From Trichosphaerium sp. ATCC 40318 (lineage: Eukaryota; Protista; Tubulinea), in assembly GCA_038496445.1 (NCBI GenBank), contig JALMLS010000064.1:682001-746000 (forward strand): DNA of 64,000 bases. Direction: 5' to 3'. The notes beneath the pieces were generated by a model. The model was not told the origin of the DNA. It saw only the letters and a list, made by a program, of their open reading frames with translations, and ran no database searches. Below are positions 1 to 6,010 of the stretch, one piece after another (the first letter of the stretch is position 1; each line of letters begins with the position of its first letter). A program made the position numbers and the translations under genes.

Positions 1-3000
1 TCCAACGTACTTTAACGATCTACACTTCAACAACGAGGTACATCACGCTCTTTCAAAATAAAATTAACAGATGGAATTGCAAAAGTTTGTCTAATGCTGT
101 AGTTAGCCTTGGTGGGCTTGTCAAAACCTAGCAAGTAGTGTTACTAAGTTCACAGAAGCCCTTGATATATTAAAAACATATCCTACAAACAACAGCTTAG
201 CAGGGAAATCTTACTCTATAAATGTTATGCGCACTTGCAAACATATACTTAAATCTAGAGAAAAAAGGCAAATTGGGACAATAGGTGGTGTTATGGGCAT
301 CATACAATCAAGAGGTGATATCGGTATATGCTCAAAACAACAAAGAAAGGAATCCTTTGCGTTTGACAAAAAGTATATCTTTATAGACGATATTTCTCTT
401 ACATCTAAAGATTTCTTCTCTTGGATAGATTCAAACAATACAGCGTAATGATATTTGAATAATTAAGTGAAACAAAGAAAATTTCTATTTGACACCACAT
501 TTTGACATTCTTACTTTTTTCCTGTTTTGATTCTGTTTTTGTTTGACTTTTTTTACAGGACGCAAATAGTGCTTGCAGAGAGCTATTCTCCTCCTGCGGG
601 GGCCGAAGATGTGCATAAAACTTTCAACTGGCAGAACGTCAGACAGTTCGTATTTACAAACACATGCACAACGACCGCTGTTCAACAAGCTTTATTAAAA
701 ATGTCAGCTCTCATGTGGAAGATTATAACACCTATTCCGCCCGTCATTGTGGACAACACACGATCAAAGTTTGTTGGAAAGTACTACACATCTACACATA
801 CGATGTACGAGGGTGTTCTAAAGCGTATTCAGGACAATATAGTTGCAGGAAACAAGCACAATGACATTTCAGTAATAGTAAATATTACAAGCATTCAAAA
901 TTTGACACCAATCATTGAGTTTTTAAATTATAATGGCGTACCAACACAAACAAACCTTCTAATGGCGCAACCTCTAGTAAATGCTTTTCGGCAGGTTTTG
1001 GTACTGTACAACCTCAAAATGAAAAAAAAGGTTGTTGGCGCTACAGCTGCTTTAACAGACATTGCAAAGCATCTATTTCATATTAATACAGACGAGTGGC
1101 CTTTTCATCATTTATTAGATAAACATGTAATGTCAGCTGAACCTTTATGGACTACACTTAATGATCTTGTAAAGAGAAACAAGATGACCTTGTTTTTAGC
1201 AAATAAGAGGATAGGTGGATCTTCAAACGGAGGTGGAAAAGGACAACGTGATAAAACTTTAGCACAATTCCGAAGACAAGTAATAGAGCTTGTCGAACAA
1301 ATATGGAATATATTCACTGCTTTCAACACGAACGAACCAACAGACTACGCAGAAATGGTTGAGGTAACGACAAGTGTAGCCCCTTCTCTTTTTTTCACAA
1401 TTTTTTTTGTAGTTGGTTTATTTTGGATACAAAGAACGTACTGGTATGGTTGATGCAGATGTAGAGTACTTTATTGCGCTATTGAAAAAATGGCAGGTTG
1501 ATTTACCAGAAAATGATTCCGAGGATGCTCGACTGAGTATGTTATTGAATGTAGCATCATATAGCAGAGAAACTATTTCTCCTGTACGAATTCTCTTTTT
1601 TTATTCTTCTAACAAAACCAATTAAAGACCTCAACCTTATTTGTAGACAGCTGCAGATGCAAATATGGTAAAAATACGTGCTGGATTCCAGATACCAGAT
1701 CATAGGCCTATGAGTACTATAATGCTAGCTGTTTATGAGAACTTTCCACCACGTATGTTTTTACTACTGTTTTTATATTCTTGTTCTAATATCTTCCTAA
1801 GCAACAAGCGAAACAAAGCCTGTATGGGAAATACAACAAAGAATTTATCAGTGGATGAAGGTTACATCACGACACTTCACTATAATGAGTGTAGAGCAAT
1901 TTAACGCTCAATCAACTCATTTGGAATCTATTCTTACCAGTACACCTTTCTATACTTTTTTTTGTTGGAATTATTAACTTGGTACTCACTCTTTTCGGTT
2001 AGGTCTTGGTATTAAGTCTATGTTTCAAATAACAGATGCAATGTATGATCCTAAACCGGATAGAAGTTTATCTGACACTGTTAATGCTCCATATCTTGTT
2101 CAAGTAAAGAAACCAATGCTTAAAACACCTGCTATTATAAGTTTCACAATGATAAAGTGCTTCTTGTGCTGTCCATTGCAAGTACGTTATAAATACTTGA
2201 ACCTAATATGTTTGTTTATGAACTAATGTATGTAGTACGCTTGGAGATATGTTGTGAAGGCACCTAGGCATAACTATGTAGAAAAAAATGAAAAGCACAC
2301 AAAATCTGTTGTTTATGGTGATGCTATGCACATTGCTTTAAATAAGGTGAAGCGGCAGACTGTCAGAGGTACTTTATAGTCAGTTTGACTTGTGTACCCT
2401 GCAATCAAATAACTCCATTCTTTATCCAGGCAAAGAAGCAGCTGCTGACACTGAGTACATAATCAAGAGCGTCGAAAAAAAACTAAAACCTCACAAAACG
2501 AAGTTATCTACAAAAGCGTTCAATGAACAGATTGACAATGTTAAGGCAGCTGTAGAGGTACAAAAAATGTCATTATTATGTCACGAATACTTTGAGTACT
2601 AAACAGCGAAAAGGCGTATAAGCGGGAAGAACAAGAAAAGCAGATTCGACTAGAAAAAGAAGGAAAAGATATAAAAACAATGACAGAATGGAGTTTCAGT
2701 ACACATCTAACAAAACACGTGCGAGTAGAAGGTATGTTGAAAGTGTTTTCTTTGGACGTTGTAAATATTGGGCTTTTAAACTAACGGGATATTTTCTACC
2801 AGGTACTGTAGATCGACTTGAGGTGGATAAAGATACCGGCAAAATACGTATTACTGGTAATAAACAATCAAAAAAAAACCTTTGCTCATCATCTTGTTAA
2901 CCAAATATCTCAGATTACAAATCAACAATACATTTACAACCAGGTGAAAGCCTACAATTACTTATGTATGCATGGGCTTGCATGAAAGGTACGCATACCA

Positions 3001-3373
3001 AATATCGAGTGTTGGTGTTATTGAACAACAAAAAAGTCGCACCAAACAAAAAAACTGTTTTGTCTGGGAACTAATTTTTATTTTCTATAGAGTACCGTAG
3101 ACTACCTACGACAATTCAATTCTCTTCAATAAAAAAAAAGAAAACCCCTTCAAAGTCTCATTATGTGACACAAGAAGATATGGACACTGTTGACACATTT
3201 GTACGAACCAAACTTTCATCATTTTGTTCTCTTACTAAAACATCGTTTAGATGAATAATTTCTCAGAGTCTGTTCCTAAATCTTCTTTTATTGCAACACC
3301 TAGTGGACATTGTACAATTTGCGCTCACTCAGCATTTTGTCCAAGTGCACAGATAACTGCTAACGAAAAATAA
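1..3373 (+). CDS. 5'-truncated multi-exon gene: degenerate UvrD/SF1 helicase-like region fused to a C-terminal PD-(D/E)XK nuclease with a 4-Cys Fe-S staple (AdnA/B, AddAB-like)
   Basis: Spliced translation gives SFTMIKCFLCCPLQYAWRY...YGDAMHIAL, GTVDRLEV...IRITDYK, QLLMYAWA and C-terminal GHCTICAHSAFCPS (stop 3371-3373). Upstream KYIFIDDISL and QIVLAESYS resemble degenerate UvrD Walker B and motif IV. Confidence 0.75.
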
Positions 3374-3637
3374 TAAAACAAAAAAAATTGTAAGCCACAG
3401 TATTTGGTGATCTCACTTTGCCTTCTCGGTGACTTTCTTTTTCTGTGCTCAATAACATAGCATAATGCTTTCACTCCATTAATGGCTACTACCTCGTAGT
3501 ATTGCTTTAGATTCAACAACAGTACGCTCATGTCACCTGACAGCCACGAAAAAACCTAAGTTCACTGAAAATCGGTTTTAACAACATGTTCGCCACTTAC
3601 GCTTAACGACGTCGCAAGTCCTCCGATAAGTATCTAA

Positions 3638-4618
3638 ATGACTTGGAGCGTATATTCATTCGTATACGTCTATGGTGCAGCTACAGACATAGAAAAGTTT
3701 GCCAGTGAATTAAATGACCTGTGGGAATCTGCAGAGGACACTAATGGGGTTAGGAATCGAAATAAGCTAACATGACGTGTAATTATTCTCTAGGTGCCTA
3801 GACTAGTGTATTTGCGGTATTCAAAGCGTCGAGAAGGTTTATGTACGCTGAACAGTGTTGTTATCGCCGTTATTCCAACATCACTCAATTTGTTTTTATT
3901 TAGCAATACTCAAGGCAAACAAGAAGAAGAAGATTGGAGTACCCTCACTTTGTGAATGTTGCGCGTATTCAATCAAAAAGCAAATCTCATACTTTTTGGA
4001 TGCAAGCAGGATAGACGACTTTAACAAACTTCCTATGTCCTGTCTGAAACTCATTATAGACCAATACTATTCATTAGATGATTTACGAGTATTGTTATCG
4101 TTTAGTAGCACATGCCCTGCTATTAAAGATCTTGAAGCAAGTCTTATTGGGGAGTTTGTTTTTGAAGCTTACTTGTTCAAAACAGAGTTCGAAAAGCCTA
4201 TTGGCATTCTAAAGGAAAAGTACAATGTCACTGTTGCTTTTCATTTCTACGAACACGAATTTAGTGGAGGATGGGTATGTTGTAGTTTCACAAGTTATAC
4301 CTCATCGAAAGTCTCTCTAATTGTATAAAAAGGTTATAGAATGTGGTGGGTACTCTGATTTAAATCCGTTGGATAGTATAGAAGATAAGTCAGATGATGA
4401 ACAATACGTTGATATGGAAGCAGAAGAAGTTTTCTTGAATGATTTTGGAACAAACTATGACAGAAGAAATGCTTTACCACAATGTCTTAATAATCCAGCA
4501 TCTTGGCAGTGCGTTCAATCAAGCTGTTCAGATTCTAGGTTTAAACTAATTCATTCCTAGACAAATACCAGTTTCAAAAAACTGGAAAATTTCAGACTTC
4601 CCATTTGTTTTCACATGA
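3638..4618 (+). CDS. Multi-exon hypothetical protein with internal F-box-like motif
   Basis: ATG 3638 and consistent GT-AG introns. DDFNKLPMSCLKLIIDQYYSLDDLRVLLSFSSTC resembles an F-box. Confidence 0.45.
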
Positions 4619-4931
4619 CCAGCAAGGCGTATGTTTTCATGTCACCAACTAAACACAACTTACAAAAATATATTTCATAATTAGTTTTCAACTTACTTTA
4701 CTACATACTCAAGGACCCTTTGTTGATTGGGTACTAGAAATGCAAGTATTACGAATATTTGAAGAAGACATCGATCTCTGTACTTGCATGTGTATGTAAA
4801 GAGTTATGCGCATGTACCAATGTAACCATATTAGATATACTACATAGAAATAAAACTAGCCAATAAAAAGGCGGAAATGATAACAAGCAGCTTAACTGTT
4901 TGCTGTTAAGCCAAATCGAAAGTTTTTGGCA

Positions 4932-6010
4932 ATGGAAGTCGTAACACAGCTTCCTGTTATTGACATTTCGCCTCTTGTCGCATCCAATCCGAAGATTGAA
5001 GATAAAGAGAGGCTGGCAGCGCAATTAGGACAGGCATGTCGTGAATTCGGTTTCTTTTACATAGTTGGGCATGGCGTTAGCGTGGAGTTACAAAAAAACC
5101 TAGAAACAGTCAGTAAATCATTTTTTGAGAAGACTAAGGTACATTACGCTGTGAACGGCAATTAAACAAATAAACCGCATCGTAGGAAGACAAAATGAAG
5201 ATAAAAATGAGTATTTCTGGCAGAGCTTGGCGTGGGTTTTTTCCTGTTGGTGACGAGTTGACATCTGGAAAGCCTGACATGAAAGAAGGCCTTTACTTTG
5301 GAAAAGAACTTGGTCAAGATGATGAAAACGTTAAAAAGTCAGTGCCTCTTCATGGCGCTAATTTATTCCCAAAAGATACTCCAGAAATGAAGAAAATAGT
5401 CCTAGAGTATATGAAACAGCTTACAGAGCTTGGTCACCTTATTATGGGTGGATTGGCGCTTAGTTTAGGATTACCTGAAGAGTATTTTAAGACTAACTTT
5501 ACAAATGATCCTTTGATTCTTTTTCGAATCTTTAACTACCCTTCACGACAACATTGTACCCAGTTTAAAGATGTACAAGATCTATGGGGTGTAGGAGAGC
5601 ATACAGATTATGGTATGCTTACAATTCTAAAGCAAGACAATACTGGTGGGCTTCAAGTCAAAACAAAGTCAAAATGGATTGAGGCTCCACCTATTGATAA
5701 TTCCTTCATCTGTAACATTGGTGATATGTTAGATCGTATCACTGGCGGACGTTTTAGGTCTACGCCGCACCGTGTACGCAATACAACAACAAATGACAGG
5801 CTGTCGTTTCCATTTTTTTTCGACCCAAATTTTAATGCACAAATTAAACTTATAGACGTACCTGACGGTTCTGGTATATCCCATGATTCCGATAGATGGG
5901 ATGGCGTTGATATCCATAAAGTAGAAGGGACTTATGGAGAGTACATATTAAACAAAGTATCAAAGGTTTTCCCACAACTGAGTAGTAGCAACAACTTAAA
6001 GAAACAATAA
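4932..6010 (+). CDS. 2-oxoglutarate/Fe(II)-dependent oxygenase (isopenicillin N synthase/DIOX family)
   Basis: LPVIDIS and ACREFGFFYIVGHG (DIOX_N); HTD...H iron triad (GEHTDYG, STPHRV); RLS 2OG-binding motif. One intron at 5139-5185. Confidence 0.95.

Follow-up and report, generated by a model that had tools for sequence, protein, structure and literature searches.

Does the nucleus of a protist encode a DNA-end-processing protein built like AddB or AdnA, the bacterial proteins in which a motor-like domain is followed by an iron-sulfur nuclease? The question is raised by a gene at the start of a 64,000-nt stretch of Trichosphaerium sp. ATCC 40318 DNA (assembly GCA_038496445.1, contig JALMLS010000064.1, positions 682,001 to 746,000). 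This whole stretch, G000:C7:682001-746000 in our numbering of the assembly (70 Mb, 642 contigs), is called the window, and negative positions lie upstream of it. A sequence-only reading of the window had described the gene as a eukaryotic, intron-containing AdnAB/AddAB-like gene, in which a dead superfamily 1 (SF1) helicase is fused to an intact iron-sulfur 'staple' nuclease. The reading that we favour, and to which we give about an even chance of being right, is that of a resident, single-copy, spliced nuclear protist gene for a protein of ~934 aa built like AddB (AddAB) or AdnA (AdnAB).

The nuclease half is encoded by exons 9-16 (2003-3373). Over these last eight exons the motifs of RecB/AddB/Cas4 nucleases follow each other in order (CP..Y, G...H, E, G.VDR, DYKS, QL..Y, and C..C.....C). 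EWSF, GTVDR, DYKS, and QLLMY, in this order in exons 12-14, are the elements of a PD-(D/E)XK nuclease of the RecB/AddB/Cas4 type. One cysteine (codon 2170-2172) is N-terminal of the nuclease core and the C-x2-C-x5-C triad CTICAHSAFC (3311-3340) is C-terminal of it, and this is the iron-staple pattern. An arrangement with one cysteine before and three after the nuclease has been established for AddB and Dna2 (PMC3378879). Several of the motifs are interrupted by introns: CPLQ is at 2170-2181 and its Y is at 2236-2238 after a 54-nt intron, the G codon of GTVDR is split (2731/2803-2816), and so is the D codon of DYK(S) (2856/2914-2924). All strings quoted in the sequence-only reading (IFIDDISL, AESYS, CPLQ/Y, GTVDR, DYK, QxxxY as QLLMY, and CxxCxxxxxC as CTICAHSAFC) occur on the + strand, and two nuclease elements can be added to its list, GDAMH and the glutamate of EWSF. 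The ordered chain of six nuclease patterns was found once in the window (2140-3311, + strand) and in none of 300 dinucleotide-preserving shuffles, and its analytic expectation is 2e-8 per 64-kb window; these patterns were composed after the sequence had been viewed, but the margin is nonetheless very large. The claim of an intact nuclease is borne out by the complete PD-(D/E)XK motif set, by the 1+3 flanking cysteines, and by a Pfam match at DYK/QxxxY. A nuclease with an intact active site and staple is thus strongly predicted by the motifs and well supported.

Family profiles were nearly silent at this half of the gene. The profile and similarity searches were made with single exons, and the only Pfam match in the whole gene was PDDEXK_1 on the 24-aa exon 14 (profile positions 140-174 of 247, E=0.081), which scored, as a single 24-aa exon, 13.3 bits and was under the curated cut-off of 22. 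The nuclease exons, searched singly, matched nothing in NCBIfam, PADLOC, or PHROGs, and the short ones gave only chance matches against PDB and plasmids. A genome-wide scan with PF12705 gave no match and missed this locus itself. In contrast, the Dna2 model (PF08696) found the DNA2 gene of this genome at another locus (C44:286064-286800, + strand), where the match is collinear over three exons. We attribute the silence of the profiles at the nuclease to divergence and to the very short exons. The gene is a clear case in which exon fragmentation and divergence conceal a domain from all profile tools although its catalytic motifs are complete. As a separate observation, C-x2-C-x5-C occurs 22 times in the six-frame translation of the whole window, where 3.6 are expected from shuffles, and the excess lies outside this gene.

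The motor-like half is encoded by exons 1-8. The sequence-only reading had proposed that a Walker A motif be looked for in upstream exons, and an intact one, AHLQTGKT, is present in exon 2, upstream of the window. We built a local SF1A alignment from E. coli UvrD, Rep, and RecB, Sinorhizobium UvrD, and a plasmid helicase. In hhalign, exon 2 was placed on the Walker A states of this alignment with a score that none of 30 shuffles reached. The other motor-like motifs (Ia, II, III, IV, IVa, V, and VI) were readable by eye only. Read in this way, the order III, IV, IVa, pre-V, V, post-V (E..FP), and VI is collinear with UvrD-type helicases. In SF1 helicases motif III has the form GDxxQSIY, and the canonical form of the post-V segment is ..EEG.FP. 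AESYS, which had been read as an eroded motif IV, is at the SF1 motif III place, and a motif IV-like NTRS is found at 755-766; the earlier assignment is probably wrong. We also considered the string YNAQ as a Q motif and rejected it, as it is N-x-Q instead of N-x-x-Q and hhalign does not place it.

The canonical UvrD motifs DExQD (II), GDxxQ (III), and TxHxxKG (V) are absent, and IFIDDISL, LAESYS, and IRAGFQIPD are found instead. The motor-like region keeps the P-loop, an acidic pair (Walker B DD), and two candidate arginines in the motif IV-like and VI-like strings, while the catalytic glutamate, the motif III glutamine, and motif V are gone. Language-model features of the central exon 5 pointed to the UvrD-helicase, UvrD_C, and ADDB_N clusters (0.86-0.89, a range that serves as a lead only). 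From the motif order and this weak lead, the N-terminal part probably has an SF1-type fold. Of the 'dead SF1 helicase' of the sequence-only reading, the Walker A part is supported by its intact sequence and its hhalign placement, while motifs II, III, V, and VI were seen by eye and matched no profile. Since Walker B reads DD and arginines are kept in the motif IV-like and VI-like strings, the word 'dead' can only be inferred, and from the residues that are gone we judge the loss of motor activity slightly the more probable state. The N-terminus of the protein (MIRFARVTNASKGSAK...) is basic and has no acidic residue for 25 residues, which gives us the impression, and only that, that it would be compatible with a short mitochondrial presequence.

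The gene model was built by hand from the three-frame translation of positions 1-3600 and of the upstream DNA, with frame switches at GT...AG borders, and was checked codon by codon. It has 16 exons on the + strand (Table 1), which join to 2805 nt and 934 codons with a sole, terminal stop. Exon 1 was included since the P-loop exon needs a start codon. The ATG is at -457 (G000:C7:681543) and the gene ends at 3373. The span of 1-3373 given before is therefore right at its end, but the gene extends upstream and three exons start before the window. In an alternative model, exon 4 is split around a 32-nt micro-exon (103..134 + 196..444), which keeps the frame and gives 929 aa. The 15 introns (46-114 nt) are all GT-AG, and the donor is GTA in 14 of them and GTAC in 9, often GTACGT. 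A canonical UvrD gene at C8 in the same genome has an intron that is fixed by homology between GDEDQ and SIYGFRGA; it is 45 nt long and runs GTACGT...TAG. The introns of the two genes cluster at 45-65 nt with strongly GTA-biased donors. This shared style supports the gene model, and it bears out the description of the gene as eukaryotic and intron-containing. The short introns and GTA-biased donors can guide the prediction of other genes in this genome. The motor-like/nuclease gene is single copy, and its central exon has no paralogue in the genome. The model and its splicing are predicted from sequence only. The 15 introns and their local style show a long residence in the nuclear genome.

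Table 1. Exons of the motor-like/nuclease gene (positions in the window; negative positions are upstream of it)
Exon	Position	Strand	Content
1	-457..-372	+	Supplies the ATG; from the splice model
2	-291..-185	+	Walker A AHLQTGKT at -242..-219
3	-138..37	+	Motif Ia-like LTPNPHELM; exons 1-3 are G000:C7:681543-682037; 3' end (1..37) inside the window
4	149..444	+	Walker B/motif II-like IFIDDISL at 377-400, DD for DE
5	559..1363	+	268 aa, central motor-like region; IVLAESYS (AESYS 575-589), NTRS 755-766, and, by eye, a IVa-like segment
6	1413..1583	+	Pre-motif V linker, by eye
7	1647..1752	+	Eroded motif V region, end ..YENFPP; by eye
8	1802..1939	+	Motif VI-like RIYQWMKVTSR at 1840-1872
9	2003..2181	+	Start of nuclease domain; first staple Cys in ..CCPLQ, CP at 2170-2175
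10	2236..2368	+	YAWRYVV.., then GDAMH at 2317-2331, His a candidate metal ligand
11	2430..2557	+	Charged helical linker within the nuclease domain
12	2614..2731	+	TEWSF with the acidic residue of motif I (E at 2686-2688)
13	2803..2856	+	GTVDR, catalytic Asp at 2811-2813
14	2914..2988	+	DYKS (D-x-K) and QLLMY at 2955-2969; weak PDDEXK_1 match
15	3091..3200	+	Spacer from QxxxY to the cysteine triad
16	3251..3373	+	C-x2-C-x5-C triad at 3311-3340; TAA stop at 3371-3373

Several known systems join or separate the same parts. Like AddB of the B. subtilis AddAB enzyme, the protist protein begins with a motor-like part and ends in a nuclease of the RecB family. B. subtilis AddB keeps Walker A while its other helicase motifs are unrecognisable (PMC3064778), and the protist protein is in the same state. 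They also share the cysteine pattern of the iron staple, with one cysteine before the nuclease and C-x2-C-x5-C after it (PMC3378879). Unlike AddB, the protist gene is eukaryotic with 15 spliceosomal introns, its product is ~230 aa shorter, it has no operon context, no AddA gene was found in the genome, and the addB and ADDB_N models do not match it. In AdnA the motor-like domain binds AMPPNP and does not drive translocation, and the protein carries an Fe-S subdomain and a nuclease for the 5' strand with a His/Asp/Asp metal site (PMC8789073). The protist protein resembles it in these features: a predicted nucleotide-binding, motor-like domain that would not drive translocation, a predicted Fe-S subdomain, and a putative 5'-strand nuclease. 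Moreover, a His, an Asp, and an Asp-x-Lys are at the motif positions of the AdnA site, and the His of GDAMH is a candidate metal ligand like His833 of AdnA (PMC8789073). Unlike AdnA, it has no detectable sequence similarity to that family, and the genome searches turned up no AdnB-like lead motor that carries a nuclease.

The UvrD-Cas4-like fusions (a branch of PF12705) also join, in one polypeptide, an SF1-type N-terminus to a Cas4-like Fe-S nuclease at the C-terminus (PMC5704561). These fusions group with UvrD-family helicases by sequence (PMC5704561) and are found in defence or restriction-modification neighbourhoods, while the protist gene has eroded motifs, is unmatched by the UvrD Pfam models, and is in a eukaryotic context. 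DNA2 and EXO5 are PD-(D/E)XK nucleases with the iron staple and the same 1+3 cysteine pattern (PMC3378879). In DNA2, however, the nuclease is N-terminal to an SF1B helicase, so that the domain order is the reverse of that in the protist gene. EXO5 is a stand-alone nuclease without a P-loop domain, while the protist protein has a P-loop N-terminus of 650 aa; the Exo5 model PF09810 matched neither the genome nor the exons of this gene. A plant AddB was considered as a further comparison and rejected, since bacterial AddB is mentioned in the EXOV paper for comparison alone, which is no evidence for a plant AddB. Taken together, the architecture, the state of the motifs, and the staple best fit an AddB/AdnA-like protein, which by this analogy would be a nucleotide-binding, motor-like scaffold that offers an Fe-S-stapled nuclease to the 5' strand at a DNA end. 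As no partner was found and the family models gave no match, the protein is best described as an analogue of AddB/AdnA, with membership in neither family established.

AddB and AdnA work with a partner, and the sequence-only reading had predicted an active-helicase partner elsewhere in the genome, to be sought as a second gene with UvrD and PD-(D/E)XK domains. No such gene was found. Exon by exon, the Pfam models UvrD-helicase (PF00580) and UvrD_C (PF13361) matched loci at C8, C238, C49, and C120 but not this locus, and none of these four, inspected with the UvrD, UvrD_C, addA, and recB models, shows a nuclease domain. Two of them are canonical UvrD/Srs2-type genes with intact motifs (C8:377.5-380.3 kb and C238:31.8-34.6 kb). 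The addA_alphas and recB models match only the helicase parts of these two genes, ending at or before profile position 875 of 1138 (addA) and 878 of 1175 (recB), and no nuclease motifs or exons were seen after motif VI when their open reading frames were inspected. This negative covers the four loci, with three sub-threshold PF00580 matches to Walker A regions (C24, C359, and C164) left out, and short nuclease exons that are diverged and split by introns could be missed. The C49 locus (147.0-149.6 kb, + strand; L018:2000-4570) is a short UvrD-like gene with intact WVFIDEAQD, AIYGFRGA, and VHRAKGRE; it matches UvrD_C_2 and weakly Viral_helicase1, and no nuclease part was seen. The C120 locus (27-32.8 kb, - strand; L019) is a large gene with ankyrin repeats, a UvrD-like P-loop core (GTGKT, YVDETQD, and VTRAKNNL), and TPR-like repeats, and is reminiscent of TRANK1-type proteins.

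Relatives of the motor-like region were sought with the central exon 5. It had no match in 1.84 billion representative proteins, and a word search gave none at E<=1. A phmmer search of PDB gave chance matches only, tblastn against plasmids gave none, and there was none in prokaryotic genome contigs or viral contigs. BLASTP against the exons of the canonical UvrD genes of this genome detected no similarity. By these searches the central exon is an orphan by sequence. When AddB sequences were sought, none was found in the prokaryotic genome contigs, and the plasmid matches were UvrD-type or lone helicases.

A number of results weigh against the AddB/AdnA-like reading, mostly at its motor-like half. 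In favour of this half, a relaxed chain I-II-IV-VI lies just ahead of the nuclease with its motifs in the correct order (expectation ~1e-4 per 64 kb), but these helicase patterns were relaxed after the sequence had been viewed. The same language-model feature search that gave a lead for exon 5 gave nothing for exon 4. The motor-like region was unrecognised by Pfam, NCBIfam, PADLOC, and PHROGs exon by exon, and a local SF1A hidden Markov model gave negative scores for all exons. In hhalign, exons 1, 3, and 5-8 were at noise level, and exon 4 scored above shuffles but aligned outside motif II. Among the family models for AddB/AdnA (addB_alphas, TIGR02786; ADDB_N, PF21445; and the NCBIfam set) none matched, and genome scans with the first two found no match anywhere, this locus included. 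An AF2 model of the 268-aa central exon alone, from the single sequence, had a pLDDT of 37 and was uninformative. The splicing and the junction between the motor-like and nuclease halves are predictions, and model scans detected no AddA-, AdnB-, or RecB-like partner in the genome.

Three other explanations were weighed against the same evidence. The protein might work by itself as an active helicase-nuclease, in the manner of RecB or the prokaryotic UvrD-Cas4 fusions, with a divergent motor that still hydrolyses ATP and translocates, so that it needs no partner. The intact Walker A, the two acidic residues kept in Walker B (IFIDD), and the arginines in NTRS (motif IV-like) and TSR (motif VI-like) agree with this, as does the missing partner, and single-polypeptide UvrD-Cas4 fusions are the largest branch of PF12705 in prokaryotes (PMC5704561). 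However, the catalytic glutamate of DExx is replaced by aspartate, GD..Q (III) and T.H..KG (V) are unrecognisable, and the UvrD-helicase and UvrD_C models that detect four other loci exon by exon do not detect this one; we consider such an active enzyme unlikely. It is slightly less likely still that the N-terminal 650 aa do not have an SF1 fold at all, but form some other P-loop NTPase or a domain specific to this lineage, joined to an iron-staple nuclease of the Cas4/Exo5 kind. Walker A alone is objectively recognisable, none of the collections searched holds a relative of the central exon, ~19 residues separate Walker A from the Ia-like string where E. coli UvrD has ~25, and no Exo5 match exists elsewhere in the genome, all of which would suit this explanation. 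The motif order III to VI read by eye is nevertheless collinear with UvrD-type helicases, the named language-model matches of the central exon are all in the UvrD/AddB clan, and in architecture and size the protein matches AddB/AdnA.

The junction between the two halves could also be a gene-model artefact, with a P-loop gene that stops at a TAA near 1977 and, next to it, a stand-alone gene for a Cas4-like nuclease that begins with the ATG at 2020, or the locus could be a decaying pseudogene. Without the intron at 1940-2002 the frame of exon 8 does meet a stop near 1977, and the ATG at 2020 is in the next frame, but this would leave an intergenic gap of only ~43 nt, and the 63-nt intron of our model preserves the frame and is of the local GTAC..TAG style. 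The open reading frame is uninterrupted over 2.8 kb of DNA with 35% G+C and across 15 introns, and all catalytic and cysteine residues are intact, which argues against decay. Artefact and pseudogene are thus both highly improbable.

The AddB/AdnA-like reading suggests how the protein may work. Its N-terminal ~650 aa would be an eroded UvrD-type (SF1A) motor-like domain that can still bind nucleotide but no longer translocates efficiently. A 4Fe-4S cluster, the 'iron staple', would be bound by the four cysteines and would place the nuclease at a DNA end or fork, and the enzyme would cut the 5'-terminated strand. Unwinding, if needed, would be provided by a helicase in trans. Alternatively, since no AddA/AdnB-type partner was found, the protein alone may be an ATP-gated end nuclease. 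A more specific proposal, which we regard as speculative and unlikely, is that the protein descends from a bacterial subunit of the AddB/AdnA type and acts in the eukaryote without a partner. Its ATP-binding, non-translocating domain would then gate an iron-staple nuclease that cuts the 5' strand at ends of mitochondrial or foreign linear DNA.

The neighbouring genes are of other kinds. Upstream is a divergent gene (G000:C7:680798-681487, - strand; L002:6798-7487) for a SIS domain of the glucokinase-regulatory-protein/MurQ type (PF22645, E=8e-17). Its start codon and that of the motor-like/nuclease gene are 55 nt apart, head-to-head, suggesting a very short promoter region common to both genes. 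Downstream on the + strand are an unassigned gene at ~3638-4560 and then a two-exon gene for a 2OG-Fe(II) oxygenase (4926-6010; DIOX_N and 2OG-FeII_Oxy, E=8e-25).

Proteins in which a motor-like domain is followed by an iron-staple nuclease (AddB, AdnA, and UvrD-Cas4) are known from bacteria and archaea. Among eukaryotic nucleases with the staple, the literature considered covers DNA2, with the reverse order, and EXO5, without a P-loop domain; no eukaryotic protein of the AddB or AdnA type came up in a narrow search of the literature. A nuclear, intron-rich, single-copy gene with a prokaryotic architecture, whose usual partner was not found, raises the question of how a subunit of this kind can act by itself or together with a eukaryotic helicase. 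It also raises the question of whether the gene is a relic of the mitochondrial ancestor or came by a later transfer. If the protein is indeed a partnerless descendant of an AddB/AdnA-type subunit, a bacterial-style end-resection module would have survived, heavily diverged and intronised, in a eukaryotic nucleus.

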